A stretch of 64,000 bases of DNA from Parasitella parasitica NRRL 2501 (taxonomy: Eukaryota; Fungi; Mucoromycota), in contig MU619312.1 of the NCBI GenBank assembly GCA_025201805.1, positions 73,676-137,675 on the forward strand. Reading direction: 5' to 3'. Both the position numbers and the translations under genes were made by a program. Shown here piece by piece: positions 1-46,431 of this stretch. The stretch's first letter is position 1. Every line of letters begins with the position of its first letter. The notes beneath the pieces are model-generated. The model worked only from the letters and a program-made list of their open reading frames with translations. It did not search any database and had not been told where the DNA came from.

Positions 1-1485
1 ACGTCTGTCTTTAGAGATGGCGTTGATGTTGTCGTTGGTACTCCTGGCCGTATCCTCGACCATATCAAGTTTGGTAACATGAAATTGAGTGATCTTAAGT
101 TTATTATACTTGATGAAGCCGATGAAATGTTGGATGCTCGTGGTTTCGAGGAGGATATGTTCAATTTGCTGTCTAGTATTCAAGAGCAAAAGACTAGCCG
201 TGATTATCAAACCTTGTTATTCTCTGCTACTGTTCCTGAATCTGTCATGGAAACTATCAAGCGTTTCCTCAAGGAAGACTATGAGCGTATTGATTTGATT
301 GGTAACGCAAAGAACAGAACTAATACCAACATTCGTCATATTGCGATGCCCTCATCTTATCATACTCGTGCTGATATTATTGGTGATGTTGTAAACGTAT
401 ATGGCCGTAGCGGTTTGACAGTTATTTTTTGTGCCACAAAGGCTGACGCCAATGAATTGGGCGCCCATGATAAAATCAAGCAAGATGCCGCTGTTCTACA
501 TGGTGACATTGCCCAATCCTCCCGTGAAGCTACTATGAAGGCTTTCCGTGAAGGCAAATACAAGTGTATTGTTTGTACTGACGTCCTTGCTCGTGGGTTG
601 GATATCCCTCAAGTCGATTTGGTTATTAACTGCCAACCACCCAAAGATACCGAGTCTTATGTTCATCGTTCTGGTCGTACTGGCCGTGCTGGCCGTTCGG
701 GTGTCTGTGTCACTTTCTTCAAGCCAGCTGAGGAAGGTCTCTTGTCTTTCATCTCCAAGCGCACTGGTGTCAAGTTTGAGCAATTGTCTGCTCCTCGTCC
801 TGAAGATATTATCGAAGCTACTACTGAAGACGCTTTCAAATCAATTGACCTTGTCAAGCCTGATGTCTTGCCTTTCTTTGCTGAATCTGCCAAGCAATTG
901 ATCGAAAAACACGGCGCTGAGAATGCAGTTGCTGCCGCCCTTGCTTTCATGACAGGTTATCATCAAGGTGTTCCCAGCCGTTCCTTACTGTCTTCCCAAG
1001 AAGGCCAAACTACTTTGCTCATGCAATTAACATACACGATACAACATCCTGGCTATGTGCGTAACATCCTTAACCGTGAGTTCCCTGAATTAGGCTACGA
1101 TGACCTCAAGAGCTGGCGTATGACCCAAGATTCTATGGGCGTCGTTTTTGACATCAACTCTTCCAAATGCGAAGTTCAAGATGATGGCACAGTTCTTTTA
1201 GTAGGTAGACCTTGGACTTCTCGCAACATTACCTTGTCTGCTCCTTCTGTTCTTCCAGCTCTCCAAGAACGTGACAATAGAGGTGGCAGAGGTGGTAATT
1301 ATGGCGGCGGCAGCGGCTATGGCGGTGGAAGAGGCGGTGGATCATATGGCGGCGGAAGAAGTGGTTACGGCGGCGGCAACCGTGGTGGAAATGGCGGCGG
1401 CGGTCGTGGCGGTTATGGTGGTGGAAACCGAAACGGAGGAGGAGGAGGCTATGGTGGCCGTAATGGTGGCTATGGCGGCCGTTAA
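1..1485 (+). CDS. DEAD-box RNA helicase, DDX21/DDX50-like (5'-truncated by window)
   Basis: Frame is open from base 1 (VVGTPGR). Motifs LDEADEML, SAT, HGD, TDVLARGLDIP and YVHRSGRTGRAG are present, followed by a GUCT-like region and an RGG-rich tail. Confidence 0.93.
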   Translation, partial: TSVFRDGVDVVVGTPGRILDHIKFGNMKLSDLKFIILDEADEMLDARGFEEDMFNLLSSIQEQKTSRDYQTLLFSATVPESVMETIKRFLKEDYERIDLIGNAKNRTNTNIRHIAMPSSYHTRADIIGDVVNVYGRSGLTVIFCATKADANELGAHDKIKQDAAVLHGDIAQSSREATMKAFREGKYKCIVCTDVLARGLDIPQVDLVINCQPPKDTESYVHRSGRTGRAGRSGVCVTFFKPAEEGLLSFISKRTGVKFEQLSAPRPEDIIEATTEDAFKSIDLVKPDVLPFFAESAKQLIEKHGAENAVAAALAFMTGYHQGVPSRSLLSSQEGQTTLLMQLTYTIQHPGYVRNILNREFPELGYDDLKSWRMTQDSMGVVFDINSSKCEVQDDGTVLLVGRPWTSRNITLSAPSVLPALQERDNRGGRGGNYGGGSGYGGGRGGGSYGGGRSGYGGGNRGGNGGGGRGGYGGGNRNGGGGGYGGRNGGYGGR

Positions 1486-1682
1486 TAGTATTAATTTATT
1501 TTCGTTATATACAATCAAATCAACAATTATTTCATCATTTTTTCCTTTTGAATAGCACTGCCTCACATCAATCTTGTATTTTATAATCGTTATACTTGCT
1601 ACACAATTCAATTTTAAATAATAAAAAAAAGTAGAAAACTTTGCATAGAGAACAAATTCCAGTAACATTCAGACTTCTCTGT

Positions 1683-2581
1683 TTAATTGCTAATATGATA
1701 CTCTTTAGCATATGCCACACCGGATGCCACGGCATGCACTCTACTATCAATTATAAGCTTTCCTTTATGTGAATTCTGCAAGCCTATAATTTACAGATGC
1801 CCGAAATATCAAAATGGTGTTCCAATACACATTCGATTTATTTGACTTACGTATCAAGTTTTCTAAAAGGCCATCTAATGGTAAACTGATTGTTTGCAGA
1901 CTCCATTCATCAGCTTCTAGCGCTGGAACAGGGGGCGTTGATAATTCGGATACGTCAATGGTTACCTTGGCAATGTAGCAACATGAGTCAGAAAGCCCAG
2001 GTTCATAAGCTAATGGTGTTTTGACTAAATCAAATTTTGAAGCAGGAACATTGTAGCCCGTTTCTTCTCTCAGTTCACGTTGCGCTGAAAGAATAGGATC
2101 CTTCTCATCTGGATCAATCAAGCCTAAATGAGAAATCTACAATGAGTATAACCATCCTTATTTATTGCCAAATTTTACTGTTACCTGACGGGAACTCTAT
2201 ACAGTAACTCTCAATGGCCGGCCTGTTTTTGCTTACTATTTTAATGTACAAACTCAACATGATTCTCTCGAGCACTTGCCTGTATTGAACTACGAATAAT
2301 AATTCTGGCTCAGGAGTCAATAAAATAGCATGAATATCAACAGCTACTCTGTAAATCAGCAAAAAAGAACCACAACCTTAAGGCAATATATGTAGAACTG
2401 TACCATCTATGCTTGAATCGCGCTCTTTTCTTCGAATACAACGCTCCCATTTTCTTTGTATACCGACATTGTCTTTATAAACTATGTATTCGAGCTGCAG
2501 CCAGTCGCCTTTACCCATAAGCTCTGGGCGAGATGTCTCGACGTCAATGAGCTCTTTCTCGAGAAATCTTGTAGTCGTCAT
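1683..2581 (-). CDS. Nudix hydrolase, ADP-ribose pyrophosphatase (NUDT5/Ysa1-like), 5 exons
   Basis: Spliced reading gives RKWERC..., VVQYRPA, IEFPSGLID..E.....AQRELREETGY (Nudix box) and C-terminal IIDSRV. One intron is GC-AG (2223-2279). Confidence 0.85.
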
Positions 2582-2873
2582 TTTGCGTTGAAGGAGTAAA
2601 AGCGATTCTTGCTTGCATAGCGCTTGTTTGTTCTATCGCCGAGAGAGGAAATACAATCACAGCAGATTTCTTACAATTCAGGGTGCAGTAGAATGATTAA
2701 ATGATACAATTGCATATGGTCAATAAACAGGAGTTAATTATCTGAATTCGGATTACTAGGGATTTCAAGTTTTTTGACACAAACTGAAGTACGGAGCTAC
2801 TCTAAAAGAGAAAATCGATTGAGCACGACATTTGCTTTTATTGAAAAACTTTCATTTACACAATGGCCTGCCA

Positions 2874-4078
2874 TTAATCCATTTCCATATCTATAGTACG
2901 GTCATTACCCGATACAGATAATTCAGTGTGTAGTAAATCCAGCAATACATCAACCATGGGCCTTTGTTTGAATAGTATGACAAACTCTGAAAGGTATCCG
3001 ATTTTTTCGCCTGCTTGTCCTAATGGATCATTTGTTATATCGAAGAAAAGTACATTTGTAGGATACCCAGAGCTTTTATCTTCAAACAATATATCGACGA
3101 GCAATCTTTGATCATAATCATTCAATACTTCAATTTCCACTTTATGTATAGACGTGCTTTGATATCTGATTTCGATAGTATGTGATTTCTTCAGTTGAGC
3201 GACCTCTTTGAGAATCTCCCTCCTAGTGACATAGGCTTGGACTTGGTCGTGCACAATACGGATAAATGACTGGAAACGTATCAATAAAATAAAATAAAAA
3301 GGTTGCTTTACTTATAGATAATAACTTACATCAAAATTATCAGGTAAATATTTGTTTTGTATAGTCAATAAATGTATGAAATTTGGTATAGTGTGATGCT
3401 CTATCAATGGCTGTGTCAAGGTTTGAATTGAATTCGACTGAAGGCCCTCATGGCTTTTTTCATAGACGATATAATAGGATTCTATATACTTTCTATTGTA
3501 GAATGTTTCTAGTCGGATACAGTTATGATTGCCTTTGAATGTGAATATTGAACGGCCAGCAAGACGATGATAACTGATTGCTTCTCGTATACAGCAAATA
3601 TCGACAGTTGACATCATTTTAGCATATACCTATGAATAACAATTGTGAGATACAAGCTATTACACGACCTAGATTGATTACCTCTTTTTCCATATCATCG
3701 AATTCATATTCTGCTACTCTGGTAGGATCTATTGATAGGTATTAATAGTGCTATCGAGGTGGATCACACGCAAAAAAAAACCTTGAATCAATGCTGTAAG
3801 CGAGGATATTGTAATATAAGATAGGTCTTCCTCAAGTAATTCTTTTCTGAGCTGCTGATCTCTGGCTGTTGCAGTTGCCACTGTTGATAATCAAAATTAG
3901 TGATGTGTACGTATATGAGCTTGAAGAATTTACATCTTCTTTTCATCTCGTTGATTTGAGCCTTTAATCTATCATTCTCACTAGGTAAGCTTTGTTTATT
4001 TCGTCAGCAGAGCTAGCACATTGTGTATCTACATGGCATTCATATTTACAAAGTATCTTCTTCCATGTTTGTTTGCAT
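2874..4078 (-). CDS. Kinetochore protein CENP-O/Mcm21-like, multi-exon
   Basis: YHRLAGRSIF...IRLETFY..KYIESYYIV...HHTIPNFI.L...KYL...QAYVTRRE matches the CENP-O pattern. Start codon (4078 or 4066) is approximate. Confidence 0.72.
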
Positions 4079-39337: not shown

Positions 39338-41216
39338 ATGACTGTATTGAATTCAACATTAAAAGCCCCATTTGGCGTGGTTGATATGGGCTCGAATGGC
39401 ATTCGATTCGGCATAGTGACAGCGTTTGCCAGACATCTGCCAGTAGCATACGAGGAAAGAGCTCCCATCTCACTGCTAGAAGCGCAAGGCGATGAGCATT
39501 ACATTCCTGCAGAAACAATTGATCAAGTCATTACCAGCTTCTTGCGCTTCAAAACGATTTGCAGACATGAAAATGTGGATCCTCACAATGTCAAAGTCAT
39601 CGCAACCGAGGCTACTCGAATAGCATCCAATTCAGGTGAGTTCTTATCGAAAATCAAAGAAGCTACGGGTTGGACAGTCGAAATACTATCAAAAGAACAA
39701 GAGGCCACGATTTCTTCCATGGGCATTGTTGGTAAGTGAAAACATGTTCTCCAAAGCTTTCAAAGTGTATAACACATCAAATTGGTATTTTTTTTTTTTT
39801 TTTTTTTTCAATGTAGGCTCTTTCTATAGAGTAGATGGGCTGACTATGGATCTGGGAGGCGGATCTGTTGAACTTAGCTTTGTCACATCAAAAGGCTCTT
39901 GTTCTCCACTATCAGAAGACTCAGAAAGACCCAAGAAGCGAGTAAAGACATCTGCAAGCCCTGTGTCACTGCCTTATGGCGCTGCCATTATGAGGAAACG
40001 ACTATCAGCATGTTCCAATGACAGGGAAAAGGCCGATCTGTATCAGGAGATTGTTCAACAAGTCGCACAAGCCAAAGTAACCACCAATATTCCAAGTCAT
40101 CTTAGAGACCATGATGGCTACACATTGTACATGAGCGGAGGAGGATTCAGGGCATTAGGATTTTTGAATATGGGCCTCACAAAAAGCAAAGACGGCACGG
40201 TGAAAAAGGGTTCGTACCCGATTCCAATAATCAGCGGCTACAGTATCACAGGTGAGCAGATGGCAGAATTAGTGGATAAATACAAGGATCGCGATCCTGA
40301 CGAACTGGTGCATGAACTCAAAGTTTTCCGTATTTCCAAGCGCAGAACGAGAATGCTGCCAGCGACCTGCTTCCTTGTCTCTGCTATAATGAAGGTGATC
40401 AAAATCAAAGACATCTACTTTAGCGAAGGTGGTGCTCGGCAAGGTATTTGCTATCACATGCTGCCGTACAGCGAGCAAATCAAGGATCCACTTTTGGAAG
40501 GCGTCAAGTCTTATGTATCACCATTGCCTCATGCACTATCATCGAATGAATTTAACACTGTGATGCACGCCTTGAACGGTGCCATTCCACCACTTTATCT
40601 TTCCCCTGACCACCCTCTCCAGCTCCACCGACTCGTGCCAGCTGCTGTTCACCTTGCAAACCTAACCACACACTATCCCAAAGAGACACGTGCATTTGTA
40701 GCGTTCCATATGCCACTTGCCAGCGGCCCATTAGCGAATATTCCTGGCCTTCTTCACTCCGAGAGAGCCATCTTGGCGTTAATGCTTGCATACCGCCAAG
40801 GAGGAGATGTGCCTGACCCCGTCTTTAACGCAATCGAAGCTATGATTGGCAAAAATGGCGTCTCTGTGTGCAAATATGTTGGCAGGTTGATGGAAATCAT
40901 GTTCATGATCTCTCCTCGTCATCCTGGATGGGGTTTGGAAGAAAGTGAAATCAAATTTCGTCTAGTTCGTCAGGAATCTGAAGACGATAGCACAAGCCCT
41001 CTTTCCTCGCCCATCACACCCCACACCAGACAGTATTATACAACTTCAAAATTGGAGATTGTGATGCCCAAGAAACTGAGCCCCATGTTGGACGCACCTG
41101 CAGTCATTTCAGTGATTGAAAGTATGGATAAAAAAGTCCAACCCAAGAAATTTGACATGGATGAAGAAACCCAAGATGTTCGAAATAAACTGTTTACTGT
41201 GACAATCGTTCACTAG
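39338..41216 (+). CDS. RTG2: Ppx/GppA-family protein, Rtg2-like
   Basis: GVVDMGSNGIRF...ARHLP...ERAPISL, ATEATR, MDLGGGSVEL, SGGGFRALG and EGGARQG. Intron at 39732-39816. Confidence 0.8.
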
Positions 41217-41273
41217 TCGTTTCCACACGGGTAATTTATTCAAATCATGTATCGAGGGATCTTCTCTCTTTTC

Positions 41274-41277
<4 letters not shown>

Positions 41278-41304
<27 letters not shown>
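41278..41304. repeat. (TA)n microsatellite
   Basis: Direct read; lies immediately left of the transposon end. Confidence 0.9.
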
Positions 41305-41305
<1 letters not shown>

Positions 41306-41311
41306 TGTATA

Positions 41312-43554
41312 CAGTGCAACCTGTGAATTTTGTCCATTTAGAAAACACAAATGGCGTTTATTGGAATATAAACATCCATTGGAAAAAAATAAATGGTGTT
41401 TCCTCAAAATTAAATATCGTATTCAAAAGCACATATTATCGTTCCTTAAACCTACATTGCATATCCTCCATAAATATTTTTTGTCTTGTTTTTTTTTTCT
41501 ACTTTTTTAAACTAATTCCCTTCAGAAAAGTCGGAAGGATACTTCTACTTCTTGCTCTGAAGGGGAGTCTTTTAAGAACAGAAACGGTAAAGATACATGT
41601 TAATTTCTGATCAAAACGTTACTAATTTAAGCTATGATGGTAGACACATATGAAAAAATTATAACCGACAATTCAGACGATGATTTTCAGCCATCAGTAG
41701 CCTTTAAATAAAGAAGTATGTATTAGCACATTATATTCATAAGTGCAGAAAATTCATAGCATTTTAAACACCCATTACATTGGTAAACAAAGCAAGAAAG
41801 AGGGCCAAGACGAAATTGGTAGCACAAGCGAGATCAGCTTTCGTAACACCAATGCTCAAGGTCCAATAACAGGTGAATCAGGCAAGAATACACAATCTGA
41901 TGAATGTACCCAATGTTACTGCTTCCAACTCTGACTCTACTGCTACCAAACCTGGTTCTAAAACGAAAAGCTTTGATGATAAAACAAGAAAAAAGGTGAT
42001 GACAGTGAAAACGACGATCAAAAATATATGGAAACCAGAATGTTTGCAGCCATTGTATAATCTAGTGAATACTACTCATACAGTCGTCACTCACACATTT
42101 GCTTTTTCAAAATACATGTTCTTGAAAGAACTGTCCGCAAACAGCAATTTTAACTTGAATGAATTTGTACGAAAAGAATTCTCTGTGGAAGTGTTCTTGT
42201 CTCTGATTGCCCAAAATACTACCCGCAGGGCTGTTAAGCATAAAGACACAACTGCAGAGTAGAGGAACTTCATAGCAAAATATCAACAATCTTACTTGGA
42301 AGACGCAAATTATAATTCCAATCAAACTGGTGAATGCTCAACAAATCGCACTATATGAGTGCACCAAGATTCAAACTGCTTATCTTAACAACATAAAGAC
42401 CCATTTTGGAAATAGATTGCAAACTCTACTAAATAAGCTCTGTGAGAAAAAAGAAAGAGCGGATACCATCCGTAAAGAAATGGCGTCCAATGCTTTTAGT
42501 GAAGAAGCTATTAACAAAGCGATACGACAAAAGGCTTACAATCCCTGTAACCAAGTTATGCAAGCTGTAGCTAAAAAAAAGGCATACCCAACGTTGATAT
42601 TTTGAATGAATCGTCAAAACCAAAAGTACAAACTTTCTTGTCGGCATATCCAGAAAATTACAAGTTTAAAATGGTCTCAATCTTCTACGATGTAAAGGCT
42701 AATCCAAAAAACCACTTCTAAGCCTTTGTTAAACTTGCTGAATTGTTTGAATTGGTGCAGCTAAAGCAATTTCTTTGTTTCCCATCAAGACCGATGTTTA
42801 TTCCTTGCTACATAAAGTTAGACAACAAGATTATCCACTACCATATTATTCAAAGCAAGGAACCTTTTGATACCAAGAAGTCAACTCGAAAACTGAGCAT
42901 CTATTGTCAATCTTAGAATCAAGGCTTTTAAAATTCGAGGATCCTTAAGCTTCAAAAATACTCTTGAAACTGATGGAGTTGGTGCCCGTATTATTAATCA
43001 GAACTGCGATACCTCCCGAAAAGAGCCGCAGTCAAGATGCTGCAAAAGAACGGTTTTAAAGTTTATCTCATTGGCGAATACAAAACATATTCCCTCTGCC
43101 CAAGTTGTGGTGGCAAGCTTGATCAAAAATTTAAACAATCCGAAACCCTATACCCATATCAACACCACAAAATGCCCACTGTAAAGTGTCATGGCCTAGC
43201 AAGGTAAAGCGAAAAAAATATATACTCACGTAACATGGATGGATCATGAAGACTAACCTTCTTCAAGATGTCGAAGCAGTATGTATTCAAGCAATCAAAA
43301 CCGACTATGGAATCGAGATCTTGCAGCTGTATTAAACTTTAGGAAGACTTTAACCTCCTTGAGGCAGACAGGCAGACGTCCGACAATTTTCTCAATACAA
43401 CAAAAACAAAAACTTTCCATCAAGGTTAACGCCCTGGTTATTTAATGCAGGTACGTACTTTTGAATCTAAAACATTTGTTTTTTTTTTGCCAAACGACAT
43501 TCATTTTTTTTTTTTTACTAACGATTTAAACTGACAAAATAATCATTCCAACTG
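41312..43554 (+). mobile_element. Non-autonomous Tc1/mariner-type DNA transposon carrying Fanzor1
   Basis: Left end TA|CAGT-N11-ATTTTGTC-N2-TTTA (41310-41340). Right end TAAA-N2-GACAAAAT-N10-ACTG|TA (43527-43556). Together these form an imperfect TIR with a TA duplication. No transposase inside. Confidence 0.68.
41520..43445 (+). pseudogene. Fanzor1 (eukaryotic TnpB-like RNA-guided endonuclease), decayed
   Basis: Fragments TVKTTIKNIWK..., TAYLNNIKTHF, YDVKANP, CFP...FIPCYIKLD, FKNTLETDGVG, VYLIGEYKT..LCPSC (RuvC-II plus Zn finger) and CHGLAR|C...RLWNRDLAAVLNF (RuvC-III, across the 43204-43267 intron). Stop at 42260-62, frameshifts, and the RuvC-I region is deleted near 43030. 5' start approximate. 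Confidence 0.88.
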
Positions 43555-43578
43555 TAATACTATTTACATTTTAATAAG
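43451..43578 (+). ncRNA. Putative Fanzor omega RNA region (scaffold to element end, plus flank-derived guide)
   Basis: Positional inference only: Fanzor/TnpB omega RNAs span the element right end into the flank. No fold was verified. Confidence 0.4.
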
Positions 43579-43621
43579 GGTAGTATATAAATCCAGACGT
43601 TGACTGTTGTACTAGAGAAAT

Positions 43622-46431
43622 CTATATTTTATCATGCATAGCAGTGCTTATGGGCGATGCTTGGTGAGGAGGAGAGTAGATGGAGGATATAAGTGTGTCT
43701 TTTCTAGCGAGTCCAATTTGATGTCTGGGTAACGGTGGAGGGGGAGGTCTATCCTTTTGGTAATTAGTGGAATTTCGTTGCTGTACTTGCAAATTATCAT
43801 CGATCGTCGTTATCAACGGCTCCGAGCTTGGAATAGCATCGTCATCGATTTTATAGTGCGTTGGTCTGGCACCAAAATCACCTTCAACTGAGCTGTTGTG
43901 AGCTTGTGCTCTGTACTCACGAGTACTGTTATAAATTGGTGGTATAGTAGTGGATGAGGAGGATTCAGCTCTGGAGCGACTTTGATGGTCAGGTATAAAC
44001 GGAGGGTATGGCTGTATTCTTTCGTCCACAGGTATTGTAGACAGTGGTGTCAAAGTCAAAGTTATAGGGTTGCTTTGGGGCCTGATTTCATCAGGCTTAT
44101 GCAGTGCAGATGTGACATGACTGTTGTTGCTGTTATTGCTGTTATTGCTGTTGTTGCTATTAAAGCTGTTGACCCCATTGTAATAGCTCGTAAGCATTTC
44201 TAGTGTATGAGAACTCGTTGTAAGGCGTTTGGAATTTCGGTTGTGTCCTGGGAGATCGCCATTGATATAAAAACTGGCTCTTTGCGAAGACATTGCCATT
44301 AGATTGGTAGAGCTGGTGTCGAGATTTGAAGATGTTGAAGCTCTGTTGCTCTTCTTTTGTTTCCTCCACATGGCCATGCGAGCTGGAGGTTTACCTGATT
44401 CGTCCAACTCATCATCTCCAAGGCCAGTTGCCATGGTAATCAAGTTTTTAACTAGCAACAGCAAGAATATAAAGTAGGCGAGGCAATGGATAGCCATTTG
44501 CATGTAGCCTACGTATTGCTTGACCATACTCGATGCTTCAATATTCGGCAGATAGCATATGTTTAAAAGTAAAACAAGTGATTTAATACAGCCAAACACA
44601 ACATGAAAAGCGTTTACTTGACTATCAGCATGCGGCCATTTGAACAGAAAGCCCAACGTCAGCAGTATTTCAGCTAAAATAATTAGTATGAGCTGTGCCA
44701 ATCCACTCGTCTGAAAGAGCCCAAGCATTGCTGCCACTACTGATTTATGTACAAGAATCACAATGAAAAAGTGAAATGTATCATCGGTATACGGGTTGTA
44801 TAGTGACCCAAATCTGAGCAAGAGTTTCAATTCCGTGTATATAAATGATGCGGGTCGGATCTGAAGCAACTTGATACTGATGAATCCGTAGAGCAGGAAG
44901 GGTACCACAAGAAATATAGCAGCAGAGAGTGTGATGTACCAAAAGGATGGTATCATCAACTGATAAAAGGATACTGTCAAAATTGGCAAATAGAGCAAAG
45001 TAATGATACGGACTAGAATTCCTATAATCAGAACATGAATTGTTACACTAAGAAGCCATGAACAACGTTGAAAATAAAATAAAATAAAACAAACCTATTG
45101 AGAAATCCCACATCTTTTTTGACATGACAGTGAAGCTTTGACGATCATTCATCTTGCCAAGCATGTAAAATACAGCCCAAATAATGCAACACAGCACTAT
45201 GCAAGACATTATGATGATGAGCGCGTAAACAAGAAAGGTGAAAAAGATGGCATTGACGTCAATTCCAGAAGCGGTTGCAAATTTGAGCATGCCTGTGCTC
45301 GTAACATTCACACCATGATCCGTTTCGTTTGCTGCTGTGATATTAGCCAATTGCCGCTTATAAATGCTGTATCTCGGGATAGAAGCAGTTTCTTGCAGTG
45401 GTGATGGCGACGACTGAAATATTCTGTGAATAACGGAATCCAGCCATCTCGACTCGAACAATAGATAGCTCCAAGAGAAATTAGAAGTGAAAAGCGCATG
45501 GAATCGTGGATAATCGATGTTGAGTTGGCCTGCCGCTACAATAAACTGGGCGTAAAATACCAGATCAAGAAATCCAGGTGTCTTTAAGCGTAACACACCT
45601 GGCAGCATGGCATAGTTGGAGCTCAGTAGAAACATATCGTGTTCTCCTCCTTGATGAAATATAGTGAACGAAGCAATCAGGGATATTATAGCTGCAGCGA
45701 CAGTAAATCCAATAGGTAGAAATGTAAAGACGTTTTGCCATGTCGGATGTTGGTAACCGACAGGAGCGAGCTTGATACATATGAGATGTTTGGAGTCTGC
45801 GTCAATTGCTGAGTACTCTGCAGTGATATCAGCCAATGGGTACGGAGCAACATCAGAAAGGTAAAAGGACTAAAAATAGACACACAGAAGAAATATAAAA
45901 TAGTTGGTTGGGTATAATTCTTTTTCTTTTTTTTTTTTTTTTCCTTCTCCAATGACCTACCCGTTGAATACTGAACTCTGTATTTTGATTTATTGGACAA
46001 CCACTTGATACATCACGGCAAAACTGCTGGGCTGGTGCGTGTAATGTTTGAAATCCAAACCTTAATTCAAACATAGAAGCAGCGAATGCTAAATTTAAAA
46101 AAAAAAGTTAATACTATATATAAACATCTTCTCGGGAGGAAATGAGTCTTTTCCTCCAATTGCTTTTTGATCGTTTATATTTACTCGATTCTTGTTGATT
46201 CAAGTTGCTGACTGTGACATTAGACGTGCTGGTAAAATTCAAATGGTAACTCCACGTTTTGACATCGAAATAGCGAGTTACAGAAGACACATCGAACTCC
46301 CCCTGATAGCAGTAAGTGAAATTGGTTGACGGAAACCACACATCATCTAATGACTGTGCATATCGAGAAGGAATTACTGTGAAAATTAATATCAAAAGGA
46401 GATTCAAATGATTTAGGTGAATAAATCTCAT
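43622..46431 (-). CDS. TRP-like / FLC (Pkd2-family) membrane protein with N-terminal ML-like domain, multi-exon
   Basis: Signal peptide, TPGFLDLVFYAQFIVAAGQLNIDYP.F..FTSNFSWS, RFGSLYNPY, multiple TM segments and a disordered tail. Confidence 0.82.

Follow-up and report, generated by a model that had tools for sequence, protein, structure and literature searches.

The mucoralean mycoparasite Parasitella parasitica is the source of PpFz1, a member of the TnpB-like, omega-RNA-guided Fanzor1 nucleases. The structure of PpFz1 with its omega RNA has been solved (PDB 9CF0-9CF3; Xu et al. 2024, PMC11423790); the protein cuts DNA in vitro with a 5'-ATN target-adjacent motif (TAM), and its published omega RNA measures 71 nt and begins with a hairpin and ...TTAATGCAGGTAAGC (PMC11423790). 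Mariner elements with TA duplications that carry only Fanzor1, such as PUl-4, have been described (Bao and Jurka 2013, PMC3627910), and the association of Fanzor with Mariner/Tc1 was confirmed again in 2023 (PMC10530073); Mucorales Fanzor1 elements were assigned to MuDR or left unclassified in PMC3627910. Here, we analysed a 64,000-nt stretch of P. parasitica NRRL 2501 (contig MU619312.1, positions 73,676 to 137,675; hereafter the window), in which positions 41312-43554 form a transposon copy of 2243 bp and 35% G+C. This copy is very probably the fossil of a non-autonomous Tc1/mariner transposon that carried a Fanzor1 gene and a 3' omega-RNA region as cargo.

The locus resembles each of the described systems in part. 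As in the PUl-4-type elements, Fanzor1 is the sole open reading frame (ORF), the repeats correspond to those found in Mariner/Tc1 elements that encode a transposase, and TA borders both ends; those elements, however, come from an oomycete, viruses and Hydra, whereas the candidate partner here belongs to a DD34E Tc1 lineage. Likeness to TnpB of IS200/IS605 extends to the RuvC nuclease, the 3'-encoded guide RNA, the left-adjacent motif acting as TAM and a proposed role in retention. In contrast, the IS200/IS605 elements are bacterial, have a TnpA Y1 transposase and show neither repeats nor target duplication, whereas the Fanzor element has a eukaryotic cut-and-paste vehicle and a gene with introns. 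Relative to PpFz1, the element family represents a separate paralogous family rather than the PpFz1 gene itself, and all copies examined are broken.

Evidence for a Fanzor1 gene came from stop-free pieces of the window copy in alternating frames, each searched separately by phmmer against Protein Data Bank (PDB) sequences, with no joined or read-through protein used as query; PpFz1 residues follow the numbering of the MBP fusion in 9CF0. All pieces lie on the plus strand, and every one matched PpFz1 on its own, with E-values from 9.1e-26 to 5.2e-7. The N-terminal ORF at 41870-42259 matched residues 498-600 (E 9.1e-26), 42897-43058 matched residues 816-860 (E 5.2e-7), 42998-43204 matched residues 1150-1206 (E 8.7e-11; also SpuFz1, E 0.0028) and 43257-43442 matched residues 1212-1255 (E 3.5e-9), while fusion residues ~861-1149 have no counterpart. 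The motifs TDG, GEYKT-CPSC and WNRDLAAVLN, from which the initial annotation had proposed a Fanzor1, align with the corresponding PpFz1 residues (TLETDGVG, DE[FY]xTS-CxxC and WNRDxAAVLNFRK): TLETDGVG at ~42960-42985 aligns with TLETDGVG of PpFz1 (E 5.2e-7), LIGEYKTYSLCPSC at ~43073-43114 aligns with LIDEFRTSSFCPKC (E 8.7e-11), and RLWNRDLAAVLNF at 43303-43341 falls in the RuvC-III piece (E 3.5e-9), all on the plus strand. The C4 zinc ribbon with its preceding Glu is present (GEYKTYSLCPSC...KCHGLAR/C versus DEFRTSSFCPKC...LCHGLLR in PpFz1) and is followed by the RD motif of RuvC-III (WNRDLAAVLNF, Asp codon 43318-43320); the last-exon peptide RLWNRDLAAVLNFRK aligns with RLWNRDQAAVLNFRK of PpFz1. 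GEYKT reflects a D>G change found in the window copy and in the full-length paralogue C57, with a small deletion at this site in the copy C10; the D of DEYKT is not invariant among the sequences read (window copy, C57, C10 and the relative P0005), as P0005 has N.

Wider comparisons gave the same assignment. Against PDB sequences, C57 matched PpFz1 at E 1.1e-100 and 4.7e-47 and SpuFz1 at E 2e-13; the REC/WED piece of the family aligns with PpFz1 over 276 residues (E 1e-100, ~65% identical by eye), and the region past RuvC-I aligns just beyond the cyclophilin-binding insertion of PpFz1. With a 287-aa paralogue ORF as query, phmmer retrieved 510 relatives from 1.84 billion representatives; many are fragments and 59 reach E <= 1e-30, and Rhizopus proteins are the best named relatives. 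Two short matches, 100% and 92% identical within the aligned part and listed at NCBI as 'hypothetical protein BD408DRAFT_..., partial [Parasitella parasitica]', are fragments of C57 and C10. Pfam returned for the stop-free pieces only a sub-threshold match to the Cas12f1-like TNB domain PF07282 (E 0.024 for the window piece; 0.0036 also seen), so the identity rests on the PDB and representative searches. Together, these comparisons support a Fanzor1 gene in the window element.

The element ends read TA/CAGTGC...CAACTG/TA (slashes mark the borders), with CAGTGCAACC as the first and TTCCAACTG as the last bases. The left TA of the target-site duplication lies at 41310-41311, CAGT at 41312-41315, ACTG at 43551-43554 and the right TA at 43555-43556, exactly where the initial annotation had placed the ends; on the left, a second TA precedes the first, giving the flank ...TTGTATA. 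The left terminal inverted repeat, of Tc1 type (41312-41411, plus strand), contains CAGTGCAACCTGTGAATTTTGTCC and two AAAYAAATGGYG subterminal motifs and differs from the left repeat of C57 at a few positions, and the right repeat (43455-43554, plus strand) has deletions of 21, 15 and 11 nt and CAACTG as its final bases. The insertion lies between the two genes named by the initial annotation, with domains PF02541 and PF23566 identifying RTG2 on the left and PF06011 a TRP/FLC-type protein on the right. Four public sequencing runs (X1, X2, X3 and X6) were compared with window positions 40912-43954, and in all four, contigs cross the intact right junction with 0 differences. A (TA)n microsatellite at 41263-41309 adjoins the insertion site on the left and, in each of the four runs, prevents contigs from being assembled across this junction. 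An empty site (TTGTATAATACT) between RTG2 and the FLC-like gene was sought in the same runs, and no joint across 41311/43555 was seen, the left junction being hidden by (TA)n.

A DNA search of the assembly (32.8 Mb, 450 contigs) recovered ~17 copies or fragments, of which C57:24650-27842 (3193 bp) is the sole full-length copy; the remaining copies examined are also broken or truncated. Fourteen left ends start with CAGTGC and seven right ends finish with AACTG, stopping at the same bases in unrelated flanks, and the ends are therefore not a product of chance. TA stands next to CAGT at 12 of the 14 left ends and next to all seven right ends, and on both sides in all six copies with both ends. 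Pairwise Kimura two-parameter (K2P) distances over the left 1 kb range from 0.02 to 0.15, so the family is old. At C16:44540-46159, a 685-aa open frame with 40-55% identity to P0005 represents another Fanzor1 family and may be intact and PpFz1-like.

The left flank carries a second, one-sided signal. Of 12 copies in the Fanzor subfamily, 11 have TATA/CAGT, where the background frequency of TA before TA is 9.8% (binomial 9e-11), and no right flank among seven has TATA (Fisher 1.6e-4). This pattern is consistent with the 5'-ATN TAM of PpFz1, with which ATA is compatible. An earlier suggestion of a TAM ending in TA thus keeps its flank, as a footprint consistent with a TAM rather than a proven one. 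An alternative that we hold to be a real possibility, if the less probable reading, is that the left TATA is not a Fanzor TAM and reflects either a preference of the transposase for TA-rich tracts or a first TA that is part of the element. Tc1-family transposases prefer TA-rich, often palindromic sites; the window copy adjoins the (TA)n microsatellite, and three deleted copies have TTGTATA in common. However, a palindromic preference predicts TATA on the right as well, where it is absent, and three related ends without Fanzor cargo have no extra TA.

Downstream of the coding region, a putative homologue of the omega-RNA core occupies 43413-43456 (plus strand), comprising stem-loop 1 (TCAAGG-TTAACG-CCCTGG) and ATTTAATGCAGGTA, which overlaps the stop codon. 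By eye, against the omega RNA given for PpFz1 in Table S3 of PMC11423790, the first ~40 nt of the published RNA are recognisable here, with the same stem-loop 1 and AUUUAAUGCAGGUA motif. Both the hairpin and AUUUAAURCAGGUA are found again in Rhizopus (L073) and in the Logan contig L074, and between lineages the two arms of the hairpin have changed in a compensatory manner (CCAAAG/CUUUGG, CCAAGG/CCCUGG and CAUAAG/CUUAUG). RNA folding of the 3' region gave no signal (z-scores 0.1 to 1.5; four sequences folded, two disregarded), and Rfam returned nothing relevant for the omega-RNA region.

The distance from this core to the element end sets the family apart from PpFz1. After AATGCAG, the PpFz1 omega RNA ends at 33 nt and the L074 element at 44 nt, whereas the end lies ~104 nt away in the window copy and ~150 nt away in C57, a stretch that is mostly the ~100-bp Tc1-type repeat. 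A guide starting at ATACTATTTAC, as predicted by the initial annotation, is accordingly not established. The Rhizopus arrhizus locus of KAG1006560.1 (L073, 789 aa) aligns with element positions 750-3193 at 63% DNA identity and has the same 3' layout, namely stem-loop 1, AATACAG/GTA, a ~60-nt spacer, a ~100-nt Tc1 repeat and the end CACTG/TA; its right end resembles the second of the two Tc1 repeat types described below. It differs in coming from another genus, in a gene that appears open and in a left end that lies off the contig. Given this alignment and the shared CACTG/TA end, a Tc1-borne Fanzor1 lineage is common to both genera. Because ~100 nt of repeat separate the omega-RNA core from the flank, guide formation in this lineage (...AUUUAAUGCAG/GUA core) becomes a testable question; that it departs from the rule that the scaffold runs to the right end, either through splicing that remodels the omega RNA or through a guide that is fixed element sequence instead of host flank, seems to us unlikely.

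Further observations concern the same 3' region. The ~60-nt spacer after ...AATGCAG is intron-like, with GTACGT, GCTAAC, a pyrimidine run and TTAG (window 43451-43554; L003:4546-4693), and the Rhizopus relative has the same spacer layout (L073:2684-2839); a second donor-like GTTAGT and TACTAAC lie within the Tc1 repeat. Run X1 contains no RNA joint at 43450. L074:1-2886, a Logan contig from SRR10989974, seems to be a complete Fanzor1 element; its 732-aa gene is open, its 30-bp terminal repeats are perfect (TACAAGCTAGAAATC...), and the contig stops exactly at these repeats with TA outermost.

Regarding the vehicle, the Fanzor element ends are imperfect inverted repeats (35/50 for the C57 left end against its own right end) with repeated AAAYAAATGKYG motifs over ~100 nt. 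The C57 left end agrees at 39/50 positions with a DD34E Tc1 terminus, with the subterminal motif AAATAAATGGCG in common. A Tc1 element nested in the C10 copy starts TA/CAGTGCGGCCGGGAAATATTGTCC, continues with AAATAAATGGCG motifs and encodes a transposase with a Pfam DDE_3 match (3.5e-24), helix-turn-helix (HTH) domains and DD34E spacing. Open 476-aa frames occur in five transposase copies (for example, C34:106103-107359) that share 99-100% identity, and paired repeats spaced 1.8-1.9 kb flank four of these; young copies of this family are found at C34:105868-107741, C65:77086-78959, C35:193418-195229 and C16:183956-185829, and at L055:1334-3458, and the family probably still transposes. CAGTGCGGCTGGTAAATTTTGTCC, the second repeat type, agrees with the Fanzor element end at 21/24 positions and occurs with an older, partly degraded transposase lineage (61-71% identical) at C45, C68 and C99. 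The Tc1 transposase had no tblastn match in the element or the window. The absence of a transposase inside, together with the Tc1-like ends and TA duplication, identifies the element as non-autonomous Tc1/mariner, as first annotated, and the DD34E Tc1 elements with related ends, which encode DDE transposases, are its likely mobilising partners.

A further candidate partner of 7.4 kb with similar ends, C58:173916-181357, was rejected because its arms are identical beyond the repeat and it is thus an inverted duplication at a contig end. The arms of this large inverted duplication (L069; C58:173416-181492) contain a short sequence related to the element's repeat.

Spread by segmental duplication or nuclease-driven homing, with the Tc1-like ends incidental, is highly improbable. 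It agrees with the fact that no transposition event was observed and with the imperfect match of the repeats, but every copy with two ends loses homology precisely at CAGT and ACTG, TA lies on either side, the flanking sequences bear no relation to one another, and the subterminal motifs held in common with DD34E elements extend over ~100 nt.

The gene itself can be traced on the plus strand through a series of decayed exons. A probable first exon (MMVDTYEKIITDNSDDDFQPSVAFK; 41634-41715) contains SDDDFQP, matching the PpFz1 N-terminus ESDDDFQPP, and is interrupted by a premature TAA at 41709-41711 where C57 has AAA. It is followed by a probable intron 1 (41716-41782), placed from sequence, with a GTATGT donor and an acceptor that is TG here and AG in C57. 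The main exon (41783-43031) covers an NLS-like (nuclear localization signal) region and REC and WED up to the TLETDGVG strand, as traced by PDB matches, an indel list and a tblastn frame map against P0001 and P0005. Frameshifts occur at 41806 (-1), 41895 (-8), 42314 (+1), 42573 (+2) and 42865 (+1), further premature stops at 42260-42262 and 42719-42721, and a compensating indel pair at 43129 and 43153; comparison with four paralogues defined the lesions unique to the window copy. The main exon ends at the junction of an 814-bp deletion (43032-43037), where alignment with C57 places TCAAGA microhomology at both breakpoints. The deletion takes out RuvC-I (MDPGRRD), the RuvC-insertion region and the GNWSAP strand, corresponding to PpFz1 fusion residues ~861-1149, and with them the catalytic aspartate of the DPG motif, whereas C57 and C10 keep MDPGRRD. 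Beyond the junction lie the RuvC-II and TNB zinc-ribbon segment (MLQKNGFKVYLIGEYKTYSLCPSCGG...KCHGLAR; 43038-43203), which accounts for the PpFz1, SpuFz1 and PF07282 matches at E 8.7e-11, 0.0028 and 0.024, a 64-nt GT..AG intron with a branch-like GACTAAC (43204-43267), and the last exon with RuvC-III (43268-43445), closed by the natural stop TAA at 43443-43445.

Transcript-like data come from X1, whose flanks differ five-fold in depth while the DNA runs are even. X1 was guessed to be an RNA run, a guess supported by this uneven depth and by a GT..AG joint. That joint, in a contig that connects 43203 to 43268, removes exactly 43204-43267, confirming the intron, the removal of which restores the frame ...GLAR/CRSS. 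Across the deletion junction (42818-43061), X1 contigs show no difference from the window copy, which makes transcription of this dead copy probable, perhaps by read-through. In the same run, a high-depth 2.9-kb contig covers window 43421-43954 and reaches from the TRP/FLC-type gene (on the minus strand, with its stop at 43622) into the right end of the element, and the 3' untranslated region of that gene may extend into the Fanzor fossil.

Loss of RuvC-I in the 814-bp deletion, together with the at least five frameshifts and three premature stops, marks the window copy as a pseudogene of the Fanzor1 family rather than a working member, in agreement with the initial annotation, and on its sequence it cannot make a nuclease. 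That the gene is alive, with frame changes that are introns in a locus encoding a shorter functional Fanzor-like protein, is hardly tenable: one of the frame changes does prove to be an intron (43204-43267) and X1 contigs match the window copy, but the rest are indels of 1, 2 and 8 nt that have no splice signals and are unique to this copy among the paralogues, the in-frame stops stand where paralogues have sense codons, and the RuvC-I aspartate region is missing.

The deletion is not confined to the window. C161, C50 and C105 carry the same 814-bp junction, and a G>A change 12 nt upstream of it is common to all four deleted copies. Shared ancestry was judged from the junction and the adjacent single-nucleotide polymorphism (SNP) in place of a left-1-kb tree; because both are identical, these sequence features show one deleted form to have reached at least four loci. 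A separate deletion of 312 bp in the REC region (window 42224-42537; GC..CT ends, not intron-like) is common to C101 (L061) and C201 (L065), where open frames of 479 and 516 aa persist, C201 also being without its 5' part; the probable RNA run X1 includes a contig with the 312-bp joint.

These observations can be arranged into a history, conjectural in part. In intact ancestors, as PpFz1 and the TnpB literature would suggest, the nuclease and an RNA transcribed across the right end would have cut element-free sites with a 5' ATN-type motif, and such cutting would have favoured retention or homing of the element. In one subfamily, a deletion at a 6-bp microhomology took away 814 bp, comprising RuvC-I, the RuvC insertion and a portion of the RuvC core, and this subfamily still reached at least four loci. 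Since the deleted form still spread, the nuclease would not have been needed for movement, and a Tc1 transposase from elsewhere would have acted in trans. The window copy was inserted at a TA between RTG2 and the TRP/FLC-type gene and later gained its frameshifts and premature stops, lost the splice acceptor of the probable intron 1 and suffered the deletions in its right repeat.

Several points weigh against this reconstruction. The homing function is derived from the literature, and mobilisation by a Tc1 transposase from the similarity of the ends. The ends of the young, intact Tc1 family have diverged from those of the Fanzor element (39/50), whereas the transposases that accompany the closer repeat type are partly degraded. 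The left-1-kb tree does not group the four deleted copies, albeit with weak support (0.70-0.77), and recurrent deletion or conversion between copies may explain their common junction. The extra left TA could, as set out above, reflect target preference or be part of the element. Finally, the RNA nature of X1 is a guess, and another copy may be the source of its spliced contig.

The window copy itself is of little importance, since it cannot make a nuclease and the active Fanzor1 of the species has already been characterised biochemically and structurally. The initial annotation had presented intact relatives as candidate programmable nucleases; their novelty was overstated, as PpFz1 comes from the same species and Mariner/Tc1 elements with Fanzor1 cargo were already described in 2013 (PMC3627910). 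Of modest value is the Tc1-borne lineage, also present in Rhizopus, with its ~100 nt of repeat between omega-RNA core and flank. Likewise of modest value are a nuclease-deleted derivative at four or more loci, which argues that Fanzor would be dispensable for movement of its vehicle, and the one-sided left TATA, found in 11/12 copies and in 0/3 cargo-less relatives, which is the footprint that would be expected if an ATN-type TAM had shaped the persistence of insertions.

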